DNA of 64,000 nucleotides from Eukaryota sp. TZLM1-RC (Eukaryota > Protista > Metamonada: BaSk clade). A program made the position numbers and the translations under genes. Shown here in pieces: positions 3,278 through 57,545 of this stretch; within the stretch, counting starts at the first letter, position 1, and each line of letters opens with the position of its first letter. The stretch is taken from positions 310,001 through 374,000 of the forward strand of contig JAUPSS010000009.1 of the NCBI GenBank assembly GCA_040285825.1, given 5' to 3'. The notes below the pieces were generated by a model that was given only the letters and a program-made list of their open reading frames with translations, was not told where the DNA came from and searched no databases.

Positions 3278-4745
3278 ATGAATTGTTTGATAAGTTGAGT
3301 TTTATTTCCGAGAGAATTAACCAAATATTGAAATTGGATGTACAGAATTATATCAAATTTAATCATTATAAGACTTTGTTTCAATTCCATTTTTAATCTT
3401 ATATTTCGATCTACAAATCCTCTCGTCACTAGGAGTTTGGCACAGAAGTTGAATGAATTACGTGCAAAAGTTTTGTCAAAATTACAAGGATGTAAAATGT
3501 TCCAAATTCCTAATCATGCATTTCTTAGTCCACAATATGGCGGTTTAGGTTGGAAATATGTCTCAATTCTTACTTCCTGTGCTTTTATCAGTAGATGCTG
3601 AAATGCAATTTTTGAATTGTCTAAAAGATTTGCAGATTGGGATGATTTATTATTGACAACACAAAGTTCTACTATTTTTGCATTAAATGAAGAAATTTCA
3701 AAAATTGATGTAGAAAAATGGAGTCAATGCTTTCCCCAATAATTCAACGGCAATAATGCAGAAAAGAATTATTTCAATTTAAAAAACACTCTTTGAACAT
3801 TACAAAAACGATTGACTGGAATTTATGAAAATGATCTTTATAAAAATATGTGCATCTCGGCTGTTTTAAATCAAGATCTTCATTCATTGTTATTGAAAAA
3901 AAATGTTTGTGAAAACAAGTCATCAGATTCTTCATTTTTTGTAACCATTGTACCACCAAGATTTTGGATTGTGTGCTTTTAATGACGCATTTGTAACAAA
4001 AATGAGCTTATATTTGAATATCTATCATTAATCAATTATTATTAAAAGAAAAATGTATTTGTTCGAATTCACCTCAGCTCACTTTGAGTCATGCTCTGAA
4101 TTGTTCGAAGTTGACAACTTATCGTTCTTCATTACATGATGCTGTTAGAGACACTGTTTTCAATATGGCACAAACTGAAAGAGTCTCGAGAATTGAAGAG
4201 CTTCTGCTGAGAGAAACACTTTCTCTGAATAATTTTTGTTCTGATGATAGAGGTGATGTATATTGTGGTTGGATTGAGAACTCTGAAGCTGTTGTTGACT
4301 TTGTATCATCTAATGTTGCAAATGACACTTTGGCTCAAAGAAGAAAACTTAATCCTGTAGATGCTCTCGAATTTAAGGCCCAAGAAAAACATAGAAAATA
4401 TGACAAAGATATCGAAGAAGCTAATGCTGATAGAAATAGACCACTTGTTTTTATTGCTTTTCCATTTTCTATAAACGTAAGACTATCAGTAGAAGCAGGA
4501 ACTCTTTTGAATAATGTCCAAAAACTGCTGCAAGAAAAAACAATGAAAGTATTTGGTATCTTTTTATGGTGCTCTCAAATTCAATTTGCCATTATTGATA
4601 GATTGTTTCAATTTTAATCGAATTAGAAAAGCTTTAGCTAGACATCAAGCAGATCAAAATTTGGTAGAGGAAATCTTTGTTCAATCAATTTCGTCCCATT
4701 AGTTATGAGTTTATTTTGTTAAGTTCGCAAGTTCAATAAATTTTA
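3278..4745 (+). mobile_element. Decayed CRE-like non-LTR retrotransposon (RT thumb region, CCHC knuckle, RLE endonuclease), family A
   Basis: Motifs 'LSPQYGGLG' (post-RT), 'CICSNSPQLTLSHALNC', 'LHDAVRD', 'DDRGDV', 'VVDFV', 'KAQEKHRKY' and 'FPFSINVRL'. Contains stops and frameshifts; ends in AATAAA. Confidence 0.8.
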
Positions 4746-9764: not shown

Positions 9765-9905
9765 TTTTATTTTTAAGGGGATGTTGAAGATGGTTTCTGA
9801 TGCTTTGCTTTCTCTTGGATCTCACTATGAGAGAGTTGCATCTAGTGTTTTTGTTTTGGGAGAGATGGATTTTTTAGATGTTGATTTATAGGTTTAGAAT
9901 AAAAT
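9765..9905 (+). mobile_element. Short 3'-end remnant of CRE-like family B
   Basis: 'KGMLKMVSDALLSLGSHYERVA...DFLDVDL*' followed by AATAAA resembles the C-terminus at 2000-2114. Confidence 0.6.
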
Positions 9906-10250
9906 TAAATTTTAAAAAAAAACATGAACAATGATTTTTTACAAGCAAAAAAGAAGAACAGCTACTATGATGCCATACTGTGGAATTGTGTTAGAAACTT
10001 TCAAGGTTCTACTTTTTTGTTGTTTAGTCCCACAACACTTATAGATACAGTGTCATTGGATTTTAATTTATATCTGACTAAACATTTCATAAAAATCAAT
10101 TCGCGCCAGATAAAGCAACTCGAAAAGGTGAATCTCTGGTTTTCTCTCGAAAAGCTATCTCGTATCTTCGAAATTCCAGTCGAAGATTGTCAGGAAATTG
10201 CCACAAAAGAAATACAAACAAAAGGCCATTCTTAAACAAACGTTTGCTTT

Positions 10251-19559: not shown

Positions 19560-20695
19560 ATATTTACTCACTCTTTGACCTTCGCTATACCTTCGTCTCA
19601 GTGGGTAATTTGAATCATGTTCATATAATTTTCCCAATTAATGACACCAAAATATCCAAACAAAAGTTGATAGTCAGCTCAGTTTCTGATCCTTGGATTT
19701 CAAAAATTTCCAAAAATGATAATCCTGATTTCGGAAATTTTTGTTGACACCCAAAACAGTTCCTCTTCGTGTTTTGTTACTCAAATTCCTTAAATTTATG
19801 GCCTTCTTTTAAATGATACCGAATTTTCTTGTACACTGCGCCTTCGATGTTTTATTGGGCCTATCAACGTGCCTCATAATTTGATTCGCAAATGTTGATC
19901 AAAAATTTCTCCAAATCATCCCTTTTAATTGTAAACACGTTATTACTTTCCGATCAAAAGTTCATGATGTAGTTATAAATCAACTTTTATGTTAAAGTCA
20001 CACAGAATTGTTTTCTATTTGGAACTTTTACTCTCTCGTTTGGTTGATGAAGATACATTGAATTCTTTTGGTCGAAATTCTTGAAGGATTTAACAAGCGA
20101 GTTGTTATCCGAGTGAATAGCGAAAATCTCCCGTCGTTCAATTGAAGGGACTTGAGTAGGTAAAAGCTGTATGTTAAGGTTTGTTGTTTAGTTTTAAGAT
20201 GTGTCTGTTTCCGGAATAAATTCTTGAAGGTTTTCAAGGGACGACTATTATTATTGATGTGAGATCCACTAATTTGTGTAACTTGTTTTTACCCTTGGCA
20301 TAGTCGAAACATCAATTCCCCTTATTCTGTTGCCGAAAATACTAAAATTGATAAACATAAAGCAAAGTTACTTCTTTCTGAATCTCACACTCATAATGTC
20401 CTCTGTCCATTTGCTTTTTCCCTACATGGCTTGCTTGGACCTCTTGCTTTATCTTTCTTGGATAATTTTGATGAAATTGTGAAAGAGAGTACTGGAAGAG
20501 TTTTGACTAAATGTTTTGTCAGAACAGAATTGTTTTATCAATTTTTACAGGTGTTATCCCGTTATTATCTTTTGCTTTATTATCTCTTGATCGCTTTTAT
20601 GAAGGAAAAGCTTCCAGTCAATTTTTGTTGGCTGATTTGTGGTAAGAAGATTTAGAACTCTAATTTTGTTGTTTTGCATTGCGTTGGAATAAATA
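19560..20695 (+). mobile_element. Decayed CRE-like element (family D, related to B), interrupted by a family C fragment
   Basis: Reads 'QIP*IYGLLLND..LRLRC..NHPFNCKHVITFRSKVHDVV', resuming at about 20226 with 'GTTIIIDVRST...CPFAFSLHGLLGP', ending at AATAAA near 20693. Homologous to 57530-57916 and 49850-50030. Left boundary approximate. Confidence 0.7.
20088..20220 (+). mobile_element. 5'-truncated 3' end of CRE-like family C with target-site duplication
   Basis: Matches about 50290-50420 (GTGAATAGCGAAAATCTCCCGTC...GGAATAAA). Flanked by the direct repeat AAATTCTTGAAGG at 20075-20087 and 20218-20230. Confidence 0.75.
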
Positions 20696-21033: not shown

Positions 21034-23688
21034 CTAATCATCCTCTTCAGATTCACTACGTTCACCATCAGTAACAATTTCTTCCACCGTAAGATCATCA
21101 ACATCACTATTAGCCTTGGGAATTAAATCTTCAGGATCTTTTTCAATTTCCTCTATTTTTACCAGATTAATTTCTGGCTTCTCATTAAAAATATTTTTTG
21201 GAATAGAATAAACGTCTGGAAAAACTGGAATTTCAGGAACAGCAATCCCTGTAGGATTCCAGTAGTCAGCATTTCCAATTCTATAAATAATGATAAAGGG
21301 AGCAATCTCAGGTGGCACTCTTTTGGTAGAACTCCATTGGTACATCTTTGGAATACAGATATCATCAGTGTAGACACAGCGATCTTCTCTTATATCTCCT
21401 CCTTTTTTGATAAATAGCTTGACAGTCATCTCACTAGGAACAAGGCCATTTCTAGATTTAAGTTTCTTTTGAGGAGGTGCAGGGAAAAGGGGATTTGTGG
21501 AGCCTTGTACAACAGCAGATTTGAAGACCTGAGCACCATCCACTGTAATTGTGTAAAACAAAGAATGTTCAGAGATTGTTACATTTTTGAAGGTAACGCG
21601 TTGAAAATGAATATTTAAAATAGAATTAATTAATGAATTCGATAAAATTGCCCTTGCTGCCTCATGTCTACATTTTTGGGTAAGTAACGAATCACTGGCT
21701 TTTGGGTGCCATTTCTGCATTTGGGACAAATACTGCTGAATCTGCCGTAATAATGAAAGCAATTCTTCAACAAACAGATCAAATTTGGATATCAAATCTT
21801 CAGCGTGAGCATAAGCTAATTTGAGTTTGTTAAATTTAAATTCTAATATATCGAACTTCTTCTTGTATTCATCTCTCTCAGCAGCAACCTCACGTGACGA
21901 GTCAACGTTATTCTGAGCTATAGACGACACCTCTTCAGTCATTTTATCTACCATTTGCGCTCTAATTTGGGTTAATTCAGAGAGCTTCTCTTCAAGCTCA
22001 GCTCGCTCTTTTCTGACCATTTCTTTAACTATATTCTTTGCCTTTCCTTGAAGATTTTGAGCTGCTTCCTGTAATTTATGAGCTGCTTCGACAGTTCGGT
22101 CCTGTAAAGTCTTGTTTTTTCCAATCAAATCATCTATAATTGACTGTTTTTCTGCAATCACTTTCTTGATTTCAGCGACTTCGTTATTATGATCTTTTTG
22201 AAGAGTGACCACGGTTTCTTTACCAACATTGGAAAGTTCTTCAATAGATGTTTCCAGGGATTCCTGCATTGCTTTTTTCATTTCTTCTTGCTGTTCAAAG
22301 AGTCGTTGACGTTCTTTTTCAAAAGATGCCAAAAGATCACGCTTTTCTTCCATCAATTTTGATTGATTGACCTCCATTTGTTTAATTGTGTCTTCGAGAT
22401 CGTTGATCTGTTCTTGCTTGTGCTCAATCAACATCATTAAAGATTCATTTTCATTCTTTAATTTCTGATTTTCAGAGCCCAAAGACTCAATTAATTCTTC
22501 ATTTTGATTCACAGTGGAATTCAATTGTTGAATCTGGCCATGAAAATCAATTCTTAGGGATCGAACAGTGTCATTCTGCTCAAATAAAAGTCCTTCAAGC
22601 TCCTTGTATTTGGCAGTCAATTCGGAAACTTCAGTCACTTTTTGAGCTAATCGATCATTTAATGATTGAATGGCTTCATCTTTTTCAATCAATTTCCGTT
22701 CTTTGATGTTCAATGCAACTGTCAACTGCTCATTTGACACGTTTGACTGGCTCAAAATTTTGATTTTTGACTGCAACTGTCTAATCAAGTCCTCTTTTTG
22801 GTCCAAATGATTGTCTTTTTCAGCAATAACTCTTTCAAGTCTCACAATTTCAACTGATTGACGATCAAAATTGCCAGAATTCACAAGACTTGCAGAATCA
22901 CCTTTTGATTGGCAATCGCAATTTGATTGATTTAAACTAACCGGACTACTTTCCAGAATAGGCAACTCCTCAACAAAAGGAACATTACACCCTTCAGAAC
23001 TGCATACGCTCACACTAAACATCACTGCCAGCAAAGCAAACGCTGTACAATACCCCTTCTCCTCCCCCTTGAGTTCATAAAGAACGTGTCGTCGTAGAAT
23101 TCTGGTTGAATCACGTAAAAGAGACCTGCTGAGGAGTTCACCGAGACTAGACAAAAGAATTGACCTCCATTCAGAAGAGGGGACGTGGAGAGAGGAGAGA
23201 AGAATATAGGTTTGTTCAATAGAGATGGAGGGATCAGAAAGGTAAACGTGATGGATCACGTGTGGTCTTCTGCGGTCAAGCTCAGAGCAATAAAGATGAC
23301 GAAGTTCGACAAAGGAGTTGAAATGAGAAAGGGGAATGGACTCATTGAGAAAGGAACCAAAAAGAGCAACTTCTGGATGTGAAGCTGAGAATCGTTTGAT
23401 GGAAGATAGTAACTCTCTACCAGTCTTTGCCAAAGAAGAGGAGAGGAGCTTACGGCAGAGCTGAGGGACTGATGTATCAGGGCTGTCTCCATTGTGGCTT
23501 CCTGATGGAGAGGTAAGAGAGAATCTACGGGTGTCGTAAACCTTTTGCACAAACGAGAGAAGCCAGCCAAGAGGTTTAGGTGTGATTGAGGAAGAAAAAG
23601 GGGGAAGTGAAGAAGAAAAGTTGGAGGAAGGAGCTGCAACATGTGGAATGTAGGAATAGTAATGGTGATCTCGTAGAGATTCTGACAT
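21034..23688 (-). CDS. Large coiled-coil protein with C-terminal C2-like beta domain, function unknown
   Basis: First ATG at 23688 (MSESL). Central heptad-rich region; C-terminal 'FYTITVDGAQVFKSAVVQGSTNPLF' resembles a C2 domain; acidic tail. Confidence 0.7.
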   Translation of the reverse strand: MSESLRDHHYYSYIPHVAAPSSNFSSSLPPFSSSITPKPLGWLLSFVQKVYDTRRFSLTSPSGSHNGDSPDTSVPQLCRKLLSSSLAKTGRELLSSIKRFSASHPEVALFGSFLNESIPLSHFNSFVELRHLYCSELDRRRPHVIHHVYLSDPSISIEQTYILLSSLHVPSSEWRSILLSSLGELLSRSLLRDSTRILRRHVLYELKGEEKGYCTAFALLAVMFSVSVCSSEGCNVPFVEELPILESSPVSLNQSNCDCQSKGDSASLVNSGNFDRQSVEIVRLERVIAEKDNHLDQKEDLIRQLQSKIKILSQSNVSNEQLTVALNIKERKLIEKDEAIQSLNDRLAQKVTEVSELTAKYKELEGLLFEQNDTVRSLRIDFHGQIQQLNSTVNQNEELIESLGSENQKLKNENESLMMLIEHKQEQINDLEDTIKQMEVNQSKLMEEKRDLLASFEKERQRLFEQQEEMKKAMQESLETSIEELSNVGKETVVTLQKDHNNEVAEIKKVIAEKQSIIDDLIGKNKTLQDRTVEAAHKLQEAAQNLQGKAKNIVKEMVRKERAELEEKLSELTQIRAQMVDKMTEEVSSIAQNNVDSSREVAAERDEYKKKFDILEFKFNKLKLAYAHAEDLISKFDLFVEELLSLLRQIQQYLSQMQKWHPKASDSLLTQKCRHEAARAILSNSLINSILNIHFQRVTFKNVTISEHSLFYTITVDGAQVFKSAVVQGSTNPLFPAPPQKKLKSRNGLVPSEMTVKLFIKKGGDIREDRCVYTDDICIPKMYQWSSTKRVPPEIAPFIIIYRIGNADYWNPTGIAVPEIPVFPDVYSIPKNIFNEKPEINLVKIEEIEKDPEDLIPKANSDVDDLTVEEIVTDGERSESEEDD

Positions 23689-23811
23689 CTTCTTACTGCA
23701 AAATAATGTCAAATAGTGGCAACCTGTTCAGATTATTGGATGATGGAGATGATGGGAAATTCCTACTAGTATATGCACACGATCAATTTTCGTGCAGAAT
23801 AATCACAAAAA

Positions 23812-25490
23812 CTATCTACAACACAGATACTGAAGCCTTTCATTACCACTCATTCTGGCTTCAGCAATTGCAAATATATTCAGACAAGCCAGCTTATTTC
23901 TATTGAAAAACTTTGATGAGCCTTTGTTACTGAGTTTGCAACTCTGACTATTACAAGCTAATAAACCATGACATGTAGTATCAGGAGTCTTTTCTCTTCT
24001 AAAATATTTGGGATTTAACACTCTCAAAAACGTAGCAATTTCTTCAAAACAAACAGGACACTTTACTGAAGTAGAGACTTCATTAATCATCAATACTTCA
24101 AATGCATTTCTTTTCAGAAAATGAATCCATCCAATGTCTCGAGTAACGCTATGATGTTCCAAATTCTTAGCACTTTTTTACCATAATCACCCATTGGTTT
24201 TAAAGTGTCTTTTGGAATGCCAAAATTCTGAACATGGTTTTTAAGACCAACTTTCGGTCTTTTGCTTGTGAATAAAAACTTGCTTTTTATGAATGCTCCA
24301 CAAGTCAATATTGTCAAAGTCAATTGTTAAAAAAATTGCCGAAGTTTGGCAACCACAAAATTGGAAAAATCTATAAAAGTTGCTGAATTGACAGCAAACG
24401 CGGATAATTCGGTGTTTGCATCTTCAATTGTCATTTCGTTAGACTCTATCATTTGGCTTCTGTCGTAATCTACCTCAGTATACCTCCCATCGTTTGTGCT
24501 TTTCATTCATCCCACTTTTCAAAGACCAGAACATCTGAGTCATTCTCAACCATTTATACTTCTTGTCTTGATTCATCACCCGACTATTTCTTTGCTGTTC
24601 AGTTTCATGTTCAGGCACCATGGTTAATTCTTGATCAGTCTTTTTACTCCCAAAATACAATAAATCACGTTTTCCAGGATCACAAACAACAATTCGTTTG
24701 CCTTGAAAAGTATCAACATCAACATCATCAATATATAAATCCGAAATTCTGGCCTTGTTGTCTGGCTTACATTTCTGACCTTGTAAATCCTGACGAACAA
24801 ATTCTACTGCAATATTAAATCCATCTGTGTGGATAATGTTGTTGAATATATAAATCTTTTGTTTAAACATTGGTTGGTTAAAATCGTCAGTATTAGACCA
24901 TAAGGCTAATTGTTCAGGTGGTTTGAATCTATAAACTTGATCTTGAGTAGTGACCGATTTTAATCTCTGTTTGGGCAACAAATCGTCCATCAATGTTTGT
25001 GTAATAATTATCCATAGTGTTCATGTATCAATAAGAAAATATCCAGGGTCGACAGTGGTTGAAACAGGAGAAATATGATAAGGTTTCCCCTCTCTACTGG
25101 AGATATATTGGGCAATTGAAATTGCCGGTTTTAAGAATATTTGATGATCTTTTTCAACAGCGTCTGCAAGAAATTGTATATCCACTGGAAAAATGTTGTA
25201 AACCAGACTTTCATCCGTGACTAAATCCTCAATTTGCTCAGTAAAGGGTGTTACAAGACAAAAAAAGATTTCATCACGTGTATTGTTTCTTATATCATGA
25301 TGTTGACACAAGTCTAAATACTCATCATCAAGAAGGTCTGAAATATTTTCAGGTGTAAGTCTTCAAGAACTCAAGTAATCTCTATCATCAACTAACAACA
25401 TGTTTTTGAATTGTCGAAGTCTAAATATGTATAATGAAATCACAGTAGACAGTGGTGTTTCATACGCACCTAGTTCGTGCAATTCTGTTA
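23812..25490 (-). pseudogene. Fanzor (Fanzor1-like, TnpB-derived RuvC nuclease) pseudogene A
   Basis: Collinear fragments: 'IHTDGFNIAVEF', RuvC-I 'IVVCDPGKRDLL' (D at 24681-24679), 'MGDYG', RuvC-II 'VLMINEVSTSVKCPVC' (E at 24081-24079), Zn 'CHGLLACNSQSC' and RuvC-III 'FNRNKLACLNI' (N where D is expected). Multiple stops and frameshifts; 5' truncated. Confidence 0.85.
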
Positions 25491-25530
25491 ACAACTAACT
25501 GAAAAATAATTTAATTTGATAACCGTAGAC

Positions 25531-25960
25531 GAAAAGAGACAATTCCGAGAGAACCTCAACAAATTTCAAAAGCTTGCTGGACATCCAGAAAAACTCTACC
25601 TTGCTGTGGGTTCTGCTAATTTCCTTTCTCATTGCCGAAAAGTCAATTGATATGGATCAGCGGGGGCTTTCAGAAAATGGTTGTGTTATCAAAAGGATGC
25701 GAAGCACTTGTCAACCAGTGAATTTAATACAAGCAAACTTTCCAGTTGTTGCGAGGCCGAGAATATTCAAGCAAGTTCATGGCAGAATGCGTATTTCTAC
25801 TGAGTGTCAAATAGTATATGACGGAGATATTTCCGCTGCAAAAAATATTCAAATGAAGATGAAAGCGGAATTGTGGCCGGAAAGATACATTTGCCCAGAA
25901 GCTCTGTTGAGGAGACGAATGAGGAGCCTGAGCATACAGAAAAAAAACTACAACCTTTGA
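25531..25960 (+). pseudogene. Second, distinct Fanzor pseudogene B (C-terminal part only)
   Basis: A frame absent from the track reads 'LYLAVGSANF..*..AFRKWL..STSEFNTSKLSSCC' (RuvC-II E at 25720, TGA at 25648). It then shifts into the track ORF 'VHG..TECQIVYDGDISAAKNI' (RuvC-III DRDxxAAxNI). Confidence 0.75.
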
Positions 25961-26018
25961 AAAACTTATATTTTATTTTGATTTTTTGTATTTTAGTTTT
26001 AATCTTTTAAAAACTTTT

Positions 26019-26125
26019 GAGACCGATCTGCAAATGCCTTAGTAGCATTTGATAGATCCACTTAGATACATCAAGTCGCCAGGCCTTATTGTGTGAAAGC
26101 AGCAGGTGTATTTAAGTGAGGTAGC
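26019..26125 (+). ncRNA. Putative Fanzor omegaRNA scaffold (structured RNA)
   Basis: Stem 1: 26025-26037 pairs with 26045-26058 (GATCT-G-CAAATGC / GCATTTG-AT-AGATC). Stem 2: 26059-26072 pairs with 26105-26118, 14 bp including two G-U pairs. Internal TGT-GAAA-GCA hairpin. Lies about 60 nt after the Fanzor B stop. Confidence 0.5.
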
Positions 26126-26332
26126 CCATTGATGAAGATCATGATTGTCTTTGTCAAATGACGTCACATGTCTCTTACAGCATGTGAGTAGACATTGAGA
26201 AAGTTGAAAACAGGAGTGAATTTCCCATGGGAATGCCTGACAAGTGAAATTCACAGTAGAGATGACATTTGCATCGATATTTGATGTCTTTTTTTCTGTA
26301 CACTTACACATCGACTACCTTGAGCAGCTCTC

Positions 26333-26878
26333 ATGAACGAACAAGCTCTTACGGAAGAACAGTTAGATAAGCTCCAACTTGAAACTACTCTGACTCAGGA
26401 AGAGATCCAAATACTTTTCAGTCGCTTCATTACACTTGATAAGGACAACAGTGGTGGCCTGGACGAAGCTGAAATAGAGAACTTAACTGACTTCACTCTA
26501 ACACCCCTTAGACGCCATTTACTTGCAGTTCTGGACACAAATGATGACAAGACCATTGACTTTGATGAGTTTCTTGCTGCTTTTTCTGCTTTTTCTTCTA
26601 ATGGAAACCAGCAGGAACGTGTTTCTTTCCTTTTCAAAGTCTACGACACTAACAATGATGGTTTTATCTGTAAGGACGATCTCTATTATGCTCTTAAACT
26701 TATGGTACAAGATAATCTGACGGAGCATCAACTTCAGCACGTTGTGGGGAAGTCTATTGTATTGTTGGATAAGGACGGGGATGGCAAAATTAGTTTTCCA
26801 GAGTTTTCAAGTTTTTTAGAAGGAGTGGAGTTGGATCTGCAAGGAAATTCTTTTTCTATAGGAATTCCGACCGAATAA
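26333..26878 (+). CDS. CNB1: Calcineurin B-like EF-hand protein
   Basis: Four EF-hands (DKDNSGGLD, DTNDDKTIDFDE, DTNNDGFICKDD, DKDGDGKISFPE) and 'LKLMVQDNLTEHQLQHVV'. Confidence 0.85.
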   Translation: MNEQALTEEQLDKLQLETTLTQEEIQILFSRFITLDKDNSGGLDEAEIENLTDFTLTPLRRHLLAVLDTNDDKTIDFDEFLAAFSAFSSNGNQQERVSFLFKVYDTNNDGFICKDDLYYALKLMVQDNLTEHQLQHVVGKSIVLLDKDGDGKISFPEFSSFLEGVELDLQGNSFSIGIPTE

Positions 26879-37050: not shown

Positions 37051-37171
37051 TGTAGGTATCTCACTAGTGAGTACCTAAGTATATAGAATAACATTAAATA
37101 AAATTATCTTTATCTTAACCCGCCTTAACTAACCCATACATACACAGCTAGCATAATGCCTAACGGCAACA
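37051..37171 (+). repeat. 5' LTR
   Basis: Matches 43819-43939 apart from one A/C difference that I could see. Confidence 0.95.
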
Positions 37172-37308
37172 ATAATTATTGTGCGTCACAGGCACACCAC
37201 ACACCAAACAGCAACAGCGCTGTAAACAACAAAAAGATGTCTGGGGTATGTCAGACATCTCTCAGAGGAGACCTTTCTAACCCTCCTCTTTACATAATTT
37301 CGAGTACA

Positions 37309-40110
37309 ATGAGTGCTCCAACAAAGGAAACGAGTACCCCTCCTTCCTCAACGAGTTCGGATGTAGTTCATCCCACTCCTGGTCAAACGAGTTCGAGTTT
37401 TTCACACTCCACTCATAGTACGACAAGTTCGGGTGGAAACCCCACTACCATTCACACGAGCGGAGATCCTCGACTCCCTCCTCCAAATCCGAGTTCGGGT
37501 CAAAACCCCACTCCTAACCAAACTCTTTCGGAGGTAACCCCTCCCACCCAAAACGCCCATTCAACGGCTACCACAGCCCTGACTACGGCCAAGGTCTCGC
37601 AGGATAAACCTCCTGCCACTGACCCAGAATTAGAAGCGCTACTTGCCACTTTCTCAAAAGAAGAAAGTGAGAAACAAGAGCCAACAGACTTTGTGGAGTC
37701 TCTCCCTTCAGATACGTCCCTGTACCCAGACTTAGAAAACTGTGTTTCGGTACAAACGTTAAACGAGACTTTAGAAGGATTCAGGGAAGTTCCCCTCACC
37801 TCACAAGTCCTTAAAGACTCTGTAGAGCTTCTTGACCAAGAAAGCAAGGAGTTGACGGGTTGACCTGCTGAACGCAGAATACGACTATCCCCACTAGACT
37901 TTTCCTATAGATCCATCATGTCCAAGCCTCGCGCCGACAGATTCGATTTTATTGGAAGAAAGGCCACCCTCGATGTATATGATTTTAGAATACGGTGGTT
38001 GGAGGTCATGGAGTATGGTCGAGACTTCTCTAACAATTTGGATGGACCCGAGAACATACACCTCCTGCCAGACTGGTTTAGGCCAGGTCTGGACAAAATT
38101 TATGAAGTCAACAGCGTATCTGGAATGGATTATACGGTAGTAAGAGAGGTTTACGAATGCTACCCATCGTCATCAAACCCTGATCTCGTTGAGATGAGAC
38201 CCGCATCTCAGCCGTTCAGGCTAATTTTCGTCGAACAAGGAGTCACCTTCAAACGAGATCATGCCAACATGAAAACGGCAGTCATCTCCACCTATAGGTC
38301 TCCCCCCCCCCCCAACCACCACAATGTACAAATTGGGGACACTTGGGTCAATAACAAGGCTTTCGCCTTCACCCCAATATTAGGTATAGAGGATACGCCT
38401 TTCCAAAGCATTAGACCTTTCAGGCCATCCATTCAACTCAACATTCAAGAGGAACCGAAACCTCTTCAGAAACTACAAATTGACCAACTACCGCAGCCTG
38501 GTAATCAGGACATTTCTATGGAAGTCCTCACCATCCAACCATCGGACACATCTGTCCCAATGGAAGAATCGACCTCACGTCAAACAGGTCCAGGATTGAG
38601 CAGACAAGATCTCTCTTCATCTCGGTCAGATACATCATCTGGAATTCATGACCCTCGACAAGTCCTAGATTTAAACTTACAATCCCACGTTGGATACCAT
38701 TATAGAACAAAGGCTGTAGAACACGAAACGCTCCATGAGCCCCCCAGACTCGAGTTCCCAGAAACTCAAATGAAAATAGTACATTTCCTACTGGAATTCG
38801 CTCTCTGGGACAATACAGGCAGAGGAGGAACGACAAACGTCGATACAATAGAAATGCCTCAAACAAGTTCAGCTCAGCAACAGAAACAAATAGCTGACAT
38901 GGTCAACAGTCTATCTCAGTTACTAGCAATACAGGGAGGCGCTACAACCGAGATACAACAACAAATAGATTCGTTAAAGTCTCAGCTCGAGTCGCTTCGG
39001 ACGCCCAAAATTTACAGAATAGACCCCAACTTCATTCAGAAAATAGGGCCACCTATTCACGCATACGACCTCTTCAGGTCCATCTTAGCGACAACCAACC
39101 CCGTGGGAATTTCGGGTTGCATTAGCGCAAGGATAATTTCCTTTTGGAAACAGCAACAGATCCTTAGCATGGAACCTACAGACGCAGAAATTCTACTGCT
39201 TCTTTGTAGGAGGAGCCAATTCAACTCGCTCCACGACGCCAAACTAGCTCTCCACAAACCCCAATTCAATTGGCGTAAAGTCAATTCAATCGAAGACGCG
39301 GAAAGGGAGTTCGCTATATACATGGAAAATTTTGGAGACATCCTGAGAATGTCGACATACATCACTGATGTATCAGCCAGGATCGAAGATGTGGTTCACT
39401 CGAGCGGAGTATTCACTCTTCCAATGTCAACAGTGGCTCATGCCTTTTTAACAGGCATTAACAACTTGGCCTTCACTGAGCCACTGTTCGAAGAATTTTG
39501 CAAAGAGAGCTACTGGAAGGACAAGCTAGTGAGCTTCCCCAAATTAACAAGGAAGGTAAGAAATGACCTATTAACTTGGATGAAGGTTGCACAAAATAGG
39601 GAAACGGTCCAGCTATTGAGGAAAGCTGCGTCCAGACCCAAGATAGAAACAGGTGATTTCCACACCTCAGCAGGAAAAAAGAGAACAAGCCAACCAGACT
39701 CATCCATCCCAAATCTAAAAAAAGAGAAACATTACAGAGGGGGCCACAAATTCTGCACCTTCTGTCAGAAGGCTGGTCATGTAATTACAGAATGTGAAGA
39801 CCCCGGATGTACCAGATCTCTGGTCCCATTAGACCAACGAAGAAGCGCCGGCAGAAGTAGAGGCCGAGGAAAACCATTTAGAGGTAGTTATGATAGTTTC
39901 AAAAATAGTCAAAGAGGCCATAGCAGAGGCCAAGGTAGATTTAGGGGCCGAGGTGGCCGTGGTACGAGAGGAAATAAACATCGTGCATATATGTTTCATA
40001 TACACCAATCATCGCACGCTACAGCTCCCGAATTGAGCCATACTTATACAACCAGCCAATCGGAACATCCAGCTCAAGCATCCCTCTTAAATCCACTCTC
40101 TTTCAAATAA
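37309..40110 (+). CDS. gag: Gag polyprotein, interrupted by one in-frame TGA at 37861
   Basis: Track ORFs 37156..37863 and 37918..40110 share a frame with an open spacer. CCHC knuckle 'CTFCQKAGHVITEC' and an RG-rich tail. Start codon tentative. Confidence 0.75.
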
Positions 40111-43100
40111 TGATAATAAAGTAGATAAATATTTGAGTTTAAACAGTTTAGAAAGAGATTTATGCAATCGAGCAGATGAATCTGCACCTTGTATGAACCA
40201 CAACAGATCCAAGCAGCCTCAGTTCTTAGAGCTTCAGGTTAGAATCAACGATACGGTCATAAAAGGCATGATAGACACAGCTGCATTTTGTTCTGTCATT
40301 TCCCTCGACCTAGCAAATCGGTGTTCAATGTCCATAAATGAAAACGATATAACACAATTCATCCCTGCTAGCAATGTATCAACGAATTCGCTTGGAAGTG
40401 CACAAGGCATTCTGACGTTCAATGTTGGCAGCATCGCGAACCAAGTATCAATAAATCATACTCTCCCCATTATACCAGGTTCGAACAAATTTTTAATTGG
40501 GGTAGACATGTTACAACAACTTGGGCTACTGACATCTGACCGTTTAGTTATTTTACTAGACGAAGAGCGCCGCACCCTGCTAAATGCTGAAGCCATTTTT
40601 GATAACAGAATTAAAACTCACCAAACTGGCCACGTAGAATCAACTTCTTGCAGTGAAGAAGACTTTACTCAGCAATTAGATAGATCTGGATGTGAGATTA
40701 ATTTAGATGATAGTGAGTATAATAAGAGTTTGTCTGATATATTAGCTCAATACAAAGACGTATTCAGCGAAAAGCCCAATAAAGATGGAATCGATTGTCC
40801 ACCCATGACGATCCCCTTCTACAATACTAATACAATTGTACATAAACCAGCTCGGGGCCTCAACCCAAAGAAATTACAAATAGCCAATCAGATTTTTGAT
40901 GAATTGATTGAAATGGGCTATGCAATTGAATCGAACTACAAGTTCAGTTCCCCAATAGTACTAGTGATATACCCTGATGATCGAAAACCCAGGTTGACGG
41001 GCGATTTCAGTGGTAAAGATGGAGTTAACGCTCATACAATTCCGGTCGAGTCTAACTTACCATTAATTTCAGATGTTTTGGAATTTCTGAGTCAGGCCAA
41101 TTTTATTGCCACTTTGGATCTTCCAAAAGCTTTTTGGCAAATGAAAGTAGCCGACGAAGATGTTGAAAAGACATCTATCTCTATTCCTGGCAGATCTATT
41201 ATGTTTAAAAGGGCATGCTTCGGACTAAAGAATATCCCAGCAATTTTTCAAAATGTAATGATGGAAATCTTCCAAATAGAAGGAGTATTTATTTACATCG
41301 ACGACATAATCATAATAGGATCAACCCTTCAAGAATTCTTTGACAGAATACAGAGGGTACTGCAATGCGCAAGGGATAGAAGAGTCAACATTGGATTGAG
41401 AAAATGTAAATTCGTTACTGACAAACAACCAATTGACATTTTAGGCAGCACTTTCCAATTCAAACAAAGAACAATTAGCAAAAAAACGAGTAGATGCTTT
41501 AATAAACATACCTGCTCCAAAAACAATCAAGGAAGTACGGTCATTAGTTGGCTCAGTCAATTTCATAAGAGATTGGCTCCCAAATATTTCACAACTAATA
41601 GCACCCATAAATGAGTTAATTAAGCACAAACAACGTCGTGTAAATTGGGAAGCCAAACACGATCACCTATTAGATCAAATAAAACAACTGATTATTAATC
41701 ACATGCCTCTGGAATTACCTTCACCAGACAAACGCATTCTGATTAGCACCGATGCATCTGACATCGCAGTAGGAGGAGTCATTTGGCAAGAAGTCGCACC
41801 TTATGCACCCATTGGAACTGCATTAAAAGATAGGAAAGTAACACCAATCTCCTTTTATAGTAGGATTTTAACCGATACTCAAAAGCGTTGGTCTACTTTA
41901 CAAAAAGAACTATATGCGATACTATTAATACTAACAGAAAGTCATCTGGAAAGCTTTCTCATTACCAGACATCTGACCATTTTCACAGATCATAGGAATA
42001 TTGCATTCCTCGCCACGGCTCCTGAAAAGAACAGAATCGTCAAAAGATGGTTACCTATCTTATCAGAATTTGACTTTGATATCGTACACGAAAAAGGAGA
42101 AGATAATCACTGGGCTGACATGATGTCAAGAAACATAGATACAAATTTAGAAAACCCGGAAATAAATCACATCAACTACCCACATGATCCCTTTTGGCAC
42201 GGTGAAATACCACCCCCCGACGACGATTCTGATTACGAAGATCCAGATCCAATCCACATTTTCGAATTAGCAAAGCACCCAGATTTACCCATTTTTTCAA
42301 ATTGGCTCTCAAAAGTTAGATCAGAGCAACAACTAGCCATTAGCAATAATGATCCATTATTCAAAAACGATACACTATGCAAAAACACAGAAATATGGTT
42401 AAATAATAATAATAAAATGATAATCCCGACCAAACTAAGAAAAACGGCACTCAACCTAATACACGGTTTAACCCAATCAGGCCACCCTAGCAAAAACGAA
42501 AGTCTTCATAAACTTTCCAAAAGCGATTTCTACTGGCCAAACATGAGAAAAGATCTCATCAAACATATAGAACGTTGTCCCACTTGCCAGAAAACAGCAC
42601 CAGTAAAGCAATCAAAAACTCCCTCAACTGGTTCCCTGTGGGCTAATCGCCCTTTCGCAAGATTAAATGTGGATACAATTGGACCACTCAATAAAGACAA
42701 CAACGATAATAAATATTTACTAGTTTTCGTCGATTCATTTACAAGGTATACAATACTCGTACCTTTAAAAGAACTTAATGCCTTAGAGGTAGCAGATGCT
42801 TTGATATGGAACGTCTGCGCTATTTTTGGCATACCTATGTCTATACATAGTGACAATGGCCCTGAGTTCGCCAACGAAATATTTAAATTGCTTTGCCAAA
42901 GAATGTCAATTGAAATGTCTAAATCAATTCCTTACCATTCTGAAAGCAATGGATTGGTTGAAAGAAAACATCGAGATGTGATACAATGTATAAGGAAATT
43001 ATTAATAGATTACAACGACTATGATTCATGGTCCACATCTGTACCAATAACTCAACTATTAATAAATTCAACCAAAAGTAGGATAACAAATCACACTCCT

Positions 43101-43790
43101 TACGAACTGATGTTTGGGTCAACTATCAGCCCAAGATCAGATCCTGCTAACATCCTAGGAGGCATTTTCGATTTTGAATCCAATGTACCACTTTTGCAAG
43201 ACCTCAAATTTAAGAATAAACGTCTTCAAAAGAGATGGGAAGAAGCAGAGCATCACCAACTATTAAATACACCCAGTCACACGAAAAACATTGATGAAAA
43301 TACATTTAATATTGGTGACTATATCCTTCGAAAGACTAAACAGCCTAATAAATTGCATGGATCTTGGTTAGGCCCATATCTGGTTTTAGAAACCCCTTCC
43401 AACTCCACTTTATTAATAAAGAACCTGACGACTGGTGAACAAACAAAAGTATCTAAGAGGGACTGTAAAATTTATAACGCTGACGATCCTAACGATGTTG
43501 ATCTACTTAGGGCAATCGCAGCCACAGATTCAGGTAAACATGTCATCGAAGAAATCCTTGACGAGTATAATACTGCTCAAGGACCCTTCTGTACTGTGAG
43601 ATGGTTTGGTGGAAGTACTACCGAGGAACCACTCCATTCTATCAGATATTCAGAAGCGTATCAACGATTTAATAAGAAACCAAATAAGAGAAAACGTAAA
43701 TCTATTAAATCCAACAACGCAGCTCGGGCTCTCCCCGTGCCTCAGCAAAAGCGTTATCCGCAGAGGAAGCGGAAGAACAATTGTACATAA
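40091..43790 (+). CDS. pol: Pol polyprotein (protease, RT, RNase H, integrase, chromodomain), with one frameshift at the A7 run 41480-41486
   Basis: PR 'MIDTAA', RT 'LDLPKAFWQ' and 'YIDD', RH 'TDASD..KELYAI..TDH', IN 'H..GH..CPTC' and 'SDNGPEF..NGLVER', chromodomain 'HVIEEILD..FCTVRWFGG.TTEEP'. Confidence 0.92.
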
Positions 43791-48159: not shown

Positions 48160-49829
48160 TTGTAGCCACAGATTGGATGATGTTTCCTTAAGAGGTCCTT
48201 CTCCTATAGTTCAAGAAGCAACAAATATGTTTGGAATTTTAGCTTCTCGTATTGGTGTTGATTTCAATCCTTCCAAATGCCAAATTCTTGGTAGACAAAA
48301 TGACTTTATCTCTTTTGAGGGAGTCGAATTGCCATTTGTGAATTATGATGATGATTGTAATGAGTTGTTGGGAACATTGATAGGTTATGAGGAATGTATT
48401 GCTCAGTCACTTAAACAAAAAGTTGAAAAAGCTTCTTCTGAACTCGCACAAATTCAAAATTTACCTTTGAAGAAACATATCAATTTTCATGTTGACAGAT
48501 TACGATTTAGTTCAAAAATTAACCACCTAATTGGTTCAATTTTTCCAACGTTGACTGCGCGCTTTGTCAAACAGTATTTGAATAAAAGAACTCAATTATA
48601 TTTTTAAAAAAAAACTTATTTTATTCAACAGAAGTTGTTAAAAATTAAAAATCAATTTCCCCAAACTCCACATCTACCATTGAAAATTTACCTAGAGCAG
48701 TTTCTTCATAAAATCTTCCTAGTGATAACAACGAGCTAGAAACAAGGCTATGCATTCCTTCAAAAATAGAAAATACAATTCTGTTTTGCCAAACGGTTCG
48801 GTCAAGTATTCATCCAGTTCTGTCTTTGACAATAGATGAAAAATCGTCTAAAAAACATAACACTGTTTTACCCAAGGTTCCAAAGAAAGAAAAAGCAAAA
48901 GGACAAGAAGGTATTGAGTGTGTGAGTTGGAATTCAGATTATTGACTTTTTCAGTATACTTGATAATTTTCGCTTCTACAGCATTACGTTATTGGAAAAG
49001 GGTGTTTGTGAAAACCAGTCACTGTTTGTAACCATTGTACCACGAAGATTTGATCTGTGTACTGCTGGTGTAGCGTTTGTAACAAAAATGAGATTACATT
49101 TGAATATCCCCATTAATCAATTATTATCAAAAGAAAAATGTATTTGTTCGAATTCACCTCAACTCACTTTGCGTCATGCTCTAAATTGCGCTAATTTGAT
49201 AACTTATCGTTCTTCATTACATGATGCTGATAGAGACACTGTTTTCAATTTGGCACAAACTGCAAGAATATCGTGTATCAAAGAGCCCCTGCTGAAGGAA
49301 ACACTTTCTCTGAATAATTTTGGTTCTGATGATAGAGGTGATGTATACTGTGATTGGATTGATAATTTTTGAAGCTATTGTTGACTTTGTCTCATGTAAT
49401 GTTGCAAATGATACTTTGGTTCACAGAAGAAAACTTAATCCTGTGACTGCTCTTGATTTTAAAGCAAAAGAGAAACATAGAAAATATGGTAAAGATATTG
49501 AAGAGGCTAATGTCGATAGAAATACACAGCTGGTTTTTATTGCTTTCCCATTTTCGATAAATGGAAGATTATCAGATGAAGCAGAAACTTTTTTGAATGA
49601 CTTCCAAAAAATGGTGCAAGAAAAAACAATGAAAAGATTTGATATTTTTTTATGGCGTTCACGGATTCAATTTGTCATTATTAATAGATTACCTCGGTTT
49701 TTCAATCGAATAAGAGAAGCTTTAGCTAGACAGCAAGCAGATCAATATTTTGTAGGGAAAATCTTGGTTCAATGATAGTCGTCCTATTAGTTATGAGTTA
49801 ATTTAATTAAGTGTGCAAATTCAATAAAT
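48160..49829 (+). mobile_element. Longest CRE-like family A remnant (RT fragment plus RLE)
   Basis: RT 'QLDDVSL..IGVDFNPSKCQIL..LLGTLIG', CCHC 'CICSNSPQLTLRHALNC', RLE 'KEPLL..DDRGDV..DFVSCNV..KEKHRKY..SINGRL'. Ends in AATAAA. Confidence 0.8.
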
Positions 49830-55393: not shown

Positions 55394-57545
55394 TTAAACT
55401 CAAGATGACGTGATCCACCTTCCTAAAGGGGAAAATCACGTTTAGCCACAGCTAACACTGCCTTCGCTTTTTTTTCGGTGGGATTTGGGAGGATCGGCGG
55501 CAAGCTTGATGTATCTAAAGTACGCGGCAGTGTTCTGAATAGAAGAAACAGGCTGAACAGTGGTTGTCCCATCGGACCAGAGCACGGTGGCGGACTCATC
55601 AGTGATATCGATAATAGCGTCAAGCATCAGCTCGCCTGAATCGGCAGCTGCATAAGCGTCGAGTATCTCCGGGGGTAACGAGGACAGGCAGGGCTTTACG
55701 AGGTGGCTGGCTGTTTTGAAAGATGAGCCCGAGACAGGGTTCTGAACCAGGAGAGAGCTAGGGAGGAGGACTTTGAGGACGACATAGGGGCCTACAAAGT
55801 GACCGTGGAGTTTGTCTGGCTTCTCGCACAGAACAAAAACTCGATCATCGGCCTAAGGGCAATATGCAGGTTCGGGCACGTCAGTGGGGAGCAGAACAGG
55901 GGACAGGATTACGGCTTCCCATGAGGCTAGAAATTTCTTCGTTAAGGTCAGAAGGTTTCAATGAACTCGGGTTTGTCTGGAGGGAGAAGGTGAGTGGACA
56001 ATAAATTCAAAAGCTGGTTGGGCAATAAATGGGGAGAGGTGTCGGGCCCAAAAATGAGACAATACGGGGATGTGTTCAAACCTTTCTTTCCTGAGAATTC
56101 AAAAGCATTTGGCACAGGGGAACATAGTCTGACCAGTTATGGTAGTCAGAGAAATCGAGTAACATTCGGCGGATTACCTGGAGGAAACTACGGTGTTGGC
56201 GCTCGACAAGGTCATTGGACTGATGGTAGTGGGGTAGGGATTGGGAATGTTCTATGTTCAAGAATTGGCATAACAAACTGAATATCTTGTTGGAAAAATC
56301 AGGGCCGTTATCAGAATGGATTCGACGAGGAGAGCCGAAGACAGAGTAGACTGAGGAAATCAAAACATAGGTAGTGGCCTTAAGGTCCTTGGTGGGAACA
56401 AGGATGCTAAAATTAGAAAAAGCATCGACGAAGTGGACTATATACTTATAGCAATCTGTATCGGCTGAGAGTGGACCGATAGAATCACAATGTAAACTCT
56501 CAAAAGGGCGACGAACAGAATTTAGAGATCCAGTAAAGGAGACAGCGGTCTTGATCACCATCTTGAGTTTGTCGGGGCGGATTCCGTTAGAGAAAAACTT
56601 CATCCTTGCAGATTCAGGGAGAAGAGAGGGGCAGATTCGGACTAGTTTGAGAAACTGAGTAATATAAGATGTGACAGCTTCATCAGCTGTGGGAACGGAG
56701 AGAGAGACGGAGGGACTGGAATCGTTGATATACGCTGGCAGGGTCCTCGAACTGACACATTGACATGAGATGGGTCAGTATGGTGGAATGACTTCTGGTA
56801 TCTATTCCATAGCAGATTTCAAATGTCTCCAAAACAATTGGAGCGATTGTATATGGAACATAAGACAACATGGCTTCAAAGAGGCGGTCTTCTTCAGAGC
56901 TGTTACGGAGCTCGAATGAAGCTAATCCGGGAAGGTTCGGGGAATCAGAGGGGTAAGAGTCAGCGTCTTCAGCAGGATCATCGGGAGGACGAAAGCAAAC
57001 GGGAGTAGAGCATCGAATGGCTTGAATGGGCTCAGTGTCGGAGTCGGAGGCTTCAGCGAAAGCTTGGGAATGGGAAGAAACTTGAGAGAGTCTACTTCTC
57101 CGGTCTTCAATCTCCTTGGACATAGCAGAGATATTGGGTTCAGTGTCGGAAACGGAGGGAGAACGGGAGGCATCTTTGGTGGATGATGACTGGGAGTGAG
57201 TAGCAGGAGGGTATCTTGTCACATCTGTCATGACATGACAAGACATACGTTGCGCGTTAACCTTCAATGCTTCTACATAGCGGGAGACGGACTCTCAACC
57301 GGTATGACTCAAATACGGAGCAATCAGGTTCGCGGGGTTCTAGGCGGGGACATGAGGCAGGACGTATTCCTTACAGGCTCCAATAATTACTGTAGTTTTT
57401 CGTGCACATAACAAAAACATAAACAAAAACAGAAGTTTATGGACAGAATATAAGAAATCAAGGAAAAATAAATATAAACTACAATTTAAACTCAAGATGA
57501 CGTGATCCACCTTTCTAAAAACGTCATGTTTAGCCACAGCTAACA
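55352..57545 (-). mobile_element. Internally deleted Ty3/gypsy chromodomain element (second family)
   Basis: 5' LTR 57545-57391 (TGTTAG...CTACA); partly deleted 3' LTR 55457-55352 after PPT AAAAAAAAGCGAAGGCAG; candidate TSD CTTT (plus AAAG at 55348-55351 and 57546-57549). Contains a gag fragment, integrase 'HCDSIGP..HSDNGPDF..LVER' and chromodomain 'DAIIDI..ATVLWSDG.TTVQP'; RT absent. Confidence 0.82.

Follow-up and report, generated by a model that had tools for sequence, protein, structure and literature searches.

How did two different RNA-guided nuclease genes come to lie against one another on opposite strands, between two host genes of a free-living metamonad, and can either of them still function? 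The question is raised by a 64,000-nucleotide (nt) stretch of contig JAUPSS010000009.1 (hereafter the window), in which an original prediction, made from the letters alone, had seen a back-to-back pair of dead Fanzor remnants in a protist genome. Fanzors are derived from TnpB and are under development as compact genome editors. Two kinds of these eukaryotic enzymes, Fanzor1 and Fanzor2, are well established as RNA-guided nucleases (PMC10432273, PMC10530073). The host is indeed a protist: Eukaryota sp. TZLM1-RC is the flagellate Skoliomonas litria, a metamonad that lives anaerobically and is haloalkaliphilic (PMC11603281).

The locus is very probably made of relics of two unrelated, non-autonomous Fanzor-carrying elements, both truncated at the 5' end and joined head-to-head by two insertions, a later deletion and subsequent decay. 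They occupy the 2.6-kb intergenic gap between divergently transcribed host genes; from 23751 to 26258, long open reading frames (ORFs) are absent and short ORFs in several frames are found instead. The minus-strand remnant (copy A, family A) is of the Fanzor1 type, while the plus-strand remnant (copy B, family B) belongs to a divergent TnpB-like family, and across 84 collinear residues no more than 20% are identical between the two, in keeping with the two different families that had been proposed. The motifs first noted were all recovered, both on the minus strand (DPG, NE.STS, CPVC/CHGLLAC and NRN) and on the plus strand (EFNTSKLSSCC and DGDISAAKNI, within 25717-25843 but not in the same frame). 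Taken with the alignments and paralogue matches given below, the agreement greatly exceeds what chance would give. The pair lies where it had been placed, although its ends are corrected from 23766 and 26125 to ~23751 and 26258; the meeting point, given as about 25500-25530, was found at 25495-25499. The copies do form an opposite-strand pair, but one in which they in fact lie head-to-head, having lost their 5' parts, with each 3' end pointing outward to a host gene. Both copies are dead, as had been proposed, and the locus is inert, with no nuclease function possible any more.

A Fanzor1 pseudogene on the minus strand

The identities of the two copies were obtained from PDB sequences and relatives, not from domain profiles on the window pieces; indeed, Pfam and NCBIfam searches with the window's own Fanzor ORF pieces gave no matches. 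The 116-residue C-terminal piece of copy A matched Parasitella PpFz1 (9CF0; E 6.9e-15) and Spizellomyces SpuFz1 (8GKH; E 4.7e-7), and its RuvC-I piece matched Guillardia GtFz1 (9CER; E 0.0066). HMMER analysis of a library of 1.84 billion proteins returned 255 relatives at E≤1e-3, the best of them being proteins of three Skoliomonas strains. The 603-residue Skoliomonas relative P0011 aligns through residues 71-602 to positions 25461-23824 (tblastn, E 2e-67). At the DNA level, copy A is 83-86% identical (blastn) to three paralogues in the same genome, namely L003 (82.7% over 1767 nt, 25494 to 23752), L002 (86%) and L004 (83%). Since L002 and L003 run at least 150 nt further in the 5' direction, copy A is 5'-truncated at 25494. 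At the other end, an alignment of four family A copies revealed that homology ceases directly past the palindrome GGGAAATTCC, some 60 nt beyond the stop codon.

All three RuvC triad positions are retained in copy A: D ('CDPGK'), E ('MINEVSTS') and N ('FNRNKLA'), the RuvC-II column being E in 143 of the 161 rows of the C-terminal alignment. No intact nuclease ORF is present, as the 5' truncation is accompanied by at least two premature stops (25365-25363 and 25023-25021) and at least four frameshifts (~24500 to ~24170). Copy A is a member of the Fanzor1 family by descent that has decayed to a pseudogene.

Among side observations on this family, the copy at L002:1066-3032 is split by an insertion of ~2 kb carrying an opposite-strand ORF of 548 residues, to which no function was assigned. 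The 1281-residue gene model P0004 of the sister strain TZLM3-RCL fuses a PolB-type 3'-5' exonuclease (PF03104, E 2.3e-13) to a Fanzor1, while at L009:4663-5439 of TZLM1-RC a DNA_pol_B_exo1 gene lies beside family A-like DNA, with a 3'-truncated family B copy adjoining.

An asparagine at RuvC-III marks the Skoliomonas lineage

The third catalytic motif reads NRN in 27 rows of the C-terminal alignment and NRD in 76, and all Skoliomonas Fanzor1 relatives have Asn at the third RuvC Asp position. In a quick maximum-likelihood tree (IQ-TREE; last 420 residues of 40 proteins, from the library or the clusters, that are 430 residues or longer and have D or N at RuvC-III, shorter fragments being left out), the 13 Skoliomonas rows form a single clade with 100% support and Asn throughout. 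Coemansia sequences with Asn are placed elsewhere on the Fanzor1 tree, which requires no fewer than four D/N changes. GtFz1 naturally possesses Asn at RuvC-III and cleaves DNA; furthermore, the D606N variant of SpuFz1 outperforms the wild type, while the N658D variant of GtFz1 has reduced activity (PMC11423790). The idea that NRN might denote a nuclease-dead family was rejected on the basis of these GtFz1 and SpuFz1 data. As the Asn is fixed across the Skoliomonas clade and is active in GtFz1, it represents a lineage trait and not a lesion. The Coemansia proteins concerned, Fanzor1s of the Kickxellomycotina (P0050, P0066, P0071, P0077, P0125 and P0143), have an independent origin of the Asn on the tree.

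Copy B belongs to a divergent TnpB-like family

When a Fanzor1 C-terminal profile was run over six-frame pieces of the window, a plus-strand piece ranked second with a marginal E-value of 0.06; the membership of copy B was settled by a paralogue search and not by this match. P0185 aligns to the coding remnant at 25503-25915 (Table 1), and the 128-residue ORF at 25574-25957 matches P0185 and its relatives, all of them from TZLM1-RC (E 6.8e-15). At the DNA level, copy B is 83-91% identical to five other copies (blastn), with homology starting at 25497-25503: L005 at 91% (25497-25949 and 26009-26257), L007 at 87.6% (25497-26258), L008 at 87% and L006 at 83%. The right end of the element, ...TTCACAGTA, is common to every copy and corresponds to window position 26258, after which the copies diverge; towards the left, the family extends at least as far as L006:2206. 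Terminal inverted repeats were sought in the unit of ~2.8 kb, and none was convincing.

Copy B retains the last ~140 codons, with two stops (25512-25514 and 25648-25650) and two frameshifts (near 25528 and 25785), and its final ~340 nt are non-coding. The family stop codon (25916-25918) is mutated, a zinc-ligand Cys has become Ser and DRD has become DGD, while only RuvC positions II and III are kept. Other members of the family exhibit the full collinear triad, with D in 'LIGVDLG' (P0207, P0206 and P0214), E in 'SEFNTSK' and D in 'YDRDISAAKNI'. In the longer ones the zinc ribbon is short (CC...CxxC), and inside the protein there is a basic PPKKKRR stretch, which, judging by its sequence, may be a nuclear localisation signal.

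A profile comparison with TnpB and Fanzor had been proposed as a check, and it succeeded in part. P0185 scores 31.8 bits against PF07282 (Cas12f1-like TNB domain), above the Pfam cut-off of 26.3, but the match to NCBIfam guided_TnpB (NF040570; E 1.2e-6) covers the C-terminus only and, at 28 bits, is far below the cut-off of 100. Copy B itself has no Pfam match, although it is 84-86% identical to P0185. In the feature space of the ESM Atlas, the neighbours of P0185 are TNB-domain proteins of giant viruses (Nucleocytoviricota).

Family B comprises at least 18 protein clusters and at least 47 annotated fragments, all in the TZLM1-RC genome, and some of its copies have long ORFs of 284-294 residues. 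Substitutions among open ORFs of 180 residues are distributed over the three codon positions as 10/8/9, 11/9/12 and 13/13/10; this even spread implies that the copies are drifting neutrally. The suggestion that intact copies exist elsewhere holds to the extent that many more copies were found, some with long ORFs (including P0044, of 648 residues, and P0196, of 1233 residues, among the Skoliomonas Fanzor1s), but no fully intact copy of either family was seen.

The 250-nt tail of family B has a mean pairwise identity of 91.6% among five copies, compared to 92.7% for the ORF. It is predicted to fold into several hairpins with a minimum free energy of -76.4 kcal/mol (z = -4.11); in a set of 200 dinucleotide shuffles, no sequence was as stable. 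The arms of a terminal hairpin (26216-26224 and 26246-26254) are situated just inside the right boundary. The tail has no Rfam match. We infer that this tail of ~250 nt, ending at 26258, is likely to be an omegaRNA scaffold, for which it is a candidate on the grounds of its position and predicted fold.

How the two relics came to be joined

Family A homology ends at 25494 and that to family B begins at ~25500, which leaves a filler of about five nucleotides that belongs to neither family. We propose that two independent insertions would have placed the elements head-to-head, after which a single deletion or break-repair event would have removed both 5' portions and joined the ends via the filler; neutral decay would then have continued through stops and frameshifts. 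In their intact state, elements of this kind would have worked in the manner described for Fanzors, encoding a RuvC nuclease directed by an omegaRNA that is transcribed at the element 3' end, with the guide read from the flank just beyond the right end. Two insertions followed by a deletion constitute the simplest account, since the ends at the junction are not family termini and the missing halves are absent from the far sides.

The same two features bear on whether one element had instead jumped into the other, such that 25495-25499 would represent an insertion boundary and not a deletion scar. Nested transposable elements are common, the copies abut with almost no filler, and the family B copy at L009 is likewise cut short beside family A-like DNA. 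Nevertheless, neither copy reaches a family terminus at the junction, copy A being short by at least 150 nt (relative to L002 and L003) and copy B by more than 1.3 kb. Moreover, the other half of an interrupted element is missing, as only ~60 nt separate copy A from the host ATG and copy B ends at its normal right end. Nesting is, therefore, less likely than two insertions and a deletion, and we regard it as improbable. It could also be asked whether the lesions are real, given that long-read assemblies may carry indel errors, that splicing is annotated in one family B gene model (P0186), and that errors in the assembly or in the consensus, or else short introns, might make intact genes appear broken. 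This is scarcely credible: the lesions include substitution-type stops, a lost stop codon and the Cys-to-Ser change at a zinc ligand, the large 5' truncations are found in no other copy, and the break points differ from copy to copy. Furthermore, host neighbours in the same assembly have unbroken ORFs of 1668, 892 and 835 residues, and the longer family B ORFs P0207 and P0204 are intron-free and read straight through.

The outward 3' ends lead to the question as to whether they have been retained as promoters or 5' untranslated regions of the adjacent host genes. The family B end is located 75 nt before the EF-hand ATG (26333); for family A, the distance from its end to the coiled-coil ATG is ~60 nt. 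At seven of the nine loci inspected (the window, counted twice, L002, L003, L004, L006 and L008; L005 and L007 do not fit), a host gene has the 3' end of a same-strand Fanzor copy ~60-230 nt upstream of it. This proportion is not significant, however (one-sided binomial p about 0.09), so that a bias in insertion or retention is at best suggested; insertions into a compact genome are simply tolerated at intergenic promoters, and the conservation of the tail does not exceed that of the dead ORF. Such co-option appears very unlikely, though somewhat less so than intact genes hidden by errors.

Several observations weigh against the proposed reading of two Fanzor relics joined by deletion, or against parts of it. 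For family B, PDB searches, including a profile search, gave only a weak, motif-level match to Cas12m (E 0.005-0.04), with none for P0204, and the single-sequence fold of a 201-residue piece was unusable (pLDDT, the score predicted for the local distance difference test, of 36). Placement within Fanzor1 or Fanzor2 was not achieved, and from its sequence the family may be termed TnpB-like only. With regard to the omegaRNA, the consensus fold of the tail contains 85 pairs with only one compensatory change, a scarcity of covariation that is due to the copies being too similar. The last 246 nt of copy A do not fold unusually compared to shuffles (z = -0.39), and a guide RNA was therefore not located by folding in family A. 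Finally, the order of events is read from the anatomy alone, as the orthologous gene of TZLM3-RCL is 33% identical and not syntenic.

Table 1. Positions of the Fanzor relics and of other features discussed, numbered from the first letter of the window.
Feature	Position	Strand	Basis or remark
Family A element remnant (Fanzor1-type), 5'-truncated	23751-25494	-	Extent set by DNA similarity to paralogues elsewhere in this genome
Fanzor1 coding remnant	23815-25461	-	PDB Fanzor1 matches, P0011 tblastn, alternating frames versus P0001, three-frame translation
RuvC-I 'VVCDPGKRD'	in ORF 24475-24993	-	
RuvC-II 'MINEVSTS', then 'CPVC' and 'CHGLLAC' zinc motifs, then RuvC-III 'FNRNKLACLN'; stretch 'MINEVSTSVKCPVC' in the same ORF	ORF 23812-24162	-	
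Family A natural stop codon	23814-23812	-	
Family A 3' non-coding tail, ~60 nt, with small hairpin (23775-23795) and palindrome GGGAAATTCC (23754-23763)	23751-23811	-	Four-copy alignment
Junction, ~5 nt (CTAAC) belonging to neither family	25495-25499		Family A judged against L002/L003, family B against L005/L007/L008
Remnant of family B element (TnpB-like Fanzor), 5' part missing	25500-26258	+	blastn to paralogous loci; 3' third of ORF and whole 3' tail kept
Family B coding remnant, equivalent to P0185 residues 43-180	25503-25915	+	tblastn with P0185, E 3e-58, 84-86% identity, three frames
'EFNTSKLSSCC'	25717-25749	+	One frame
'YDGDISAAKNI'	~25811-25843	+	Different frame from 'EFNTSKLSSCC'
AT-rich spacer of ~60 nt past the family B ORF	25950-26008	+	Found in the window copy, L007 and L008, shorter in L006, missing from L005 and L009 (indel polymorphism)
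Conserved structured 3' tail, candidate omegaRNA scaffold	26009-26258	+	Identity among copies, folding z-score
Coiled-coil host gene, 884-residue protein	ATG at 23688	-	Left flank of Fanzor pair
EF-hand host gene	ATG at 26333	+	Right flank of Fanzor pair
Aspartyl protease and reverse transcriptase of long terminal repeat retrotransposon	40133-41614	+	
RNase H and integrase of the same retrotransposon	41703-43790	+	
Separate integrase fragment	56076-56603	-	

Neighbouring genes and other repeats

The host genes in the window are long, unbroken ORFs, with those for RPB1, symplekin and the EF-hand protein among them. No further Fanzor copies were found within the window. It had also been stated that the window contains no transposase, and there is indeed no DNA transposase beside the pair; the statement does not extend to integrases, since a long terminal repeat (LTR) retrotransposon integrase is encoded 14-18 kb away, in addition to the separate integrase fragment (Table 1). 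The integrase of this unrelated retrotransposon and the fragment are the only transposase-class domains in the window. The LTR retrotransposon is of the Ty3/gypsy type and has open ORFs (37156-43790, plus strand).

A repeated ORF of unknown kind occurs three times in the window, at 4159-4515 (plus strand), 49244-49595 (plus strand) and 58326-57977 (minus strand). The three copies have 75-88% protein identity to the N-terminal part of P0037 (TZLM1-RC) and no Pfam match. As a gene model, P0037 looks chimeric, the repeat ORF being joined to the C-terminal tail of a family A Fanzor. Dispersed repeats at 20039-20695 (minus strand), 9795-9919 (minus strand) and 48705-48833 (plus strand) are 73-90% identical to segments near the family B copies L005, L006 and L008. 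Their positions and orientations vary between loci, and they represent separate repeat families outside the Fanzor elements.

Comparison with known Fanzor and TnpB systems

Copy A shares with the structurally solved Fanzor1 proteins PpFz1 of Parasitella parasitica (9CF0), SpuFz1 of Spizellomyces punctatus (8GKH) and GtFz1 of Guillardia theta (9CER) the E-x-TS and CxxC motifs, the long 'NPxxxRRE...CHGLLxC' insert and 'NR[D/N]', along with the RuvC-I motif 'CDPGKRD'. It resembles GtFz1 in particular in its Asn at the third catalytic position, with which that enzyme is active (PMC11423790). Unlike these proteins, copy A is a pseudogene, falls in a clade of Skoliomonas sequences only, 30-50% identical to the nearest full-length relatives, and has no structured 3' RNA detectable by folding of its last 246 nt.

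Family B is reminiscent of Fanzor2 and of TnpB of the IS200/IS605 and IS607 type (PF07282, NF040570). It displays a compact end with 'E-F-N-TSK', CC...CxxC and 'DRDxxAAKNI', a 'GVDLG' RuvC-I motif and a TNB domain above the Pfam threshold; giant-virus TNB proteins as nearest neighbours are typical of Fanzor2, although this is only a lead. Its 3' tail, which is long, non-coding and conserved, stops precisely where the element does, as omegaRNA genes do. Family B differs from Fanzor2 and TnpB in having no significant sequence match to any solved member of either, in being known from one protist genome only and in its internal PPKKKRR stretch. Neither TnpA nor another transposase was seen in the ~2.8-kb unit, and the same applies to terminal inverted repeats.

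Significance for Skoliomonas and for Fanzor evolution

The S. litria lineage carries at least two distinct multi-copy Fanzor families, and we found no paper describing either, which agrees with the suggestion that they are uncharacterised. The literature library that was searched contained no paper in which Fanzor is paired with Skoliomonas or metamonads. Metamonads are also unmentioned in those parts of the text that were searched in two 2023 surveys (PMC10432273, PMC10530073) and a bioRxiv preprint (10.1101/2023.08.09.552727). While the kind of element was already known, the host lineage, a free-living metamonad, and the divergent family are new here.

The locus provides an additional data point on the decay of Fanzor elements in a compact genome, and its value, dead as it is, lies in pointing to families worth mining for intact copies. 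One of these is a private Skoliomonas Fanzor1 clade fixed for a non-canonical triad with Asn, a residue reported to raise the activity of SpuFz1. The other is family B, TnpB-like and strongly divergent, with a well-delimited 3' tail that is predicted to be structured. As for this family, it is conceivable, if rather unlikely, that it stands apart from both Fanzor1 and Fanzor2 as a third TnpB-derived nuclease lineage of eukaryotes, independent of the other two, confined to S. litria and possessing an omegaRNA of ~250 nt, a nuclear localisation signal and active master copies. If this were true, S. litria would, together with its Asn-type Fanzor1 clade, be a source of new compact RNA-guided nucleases.

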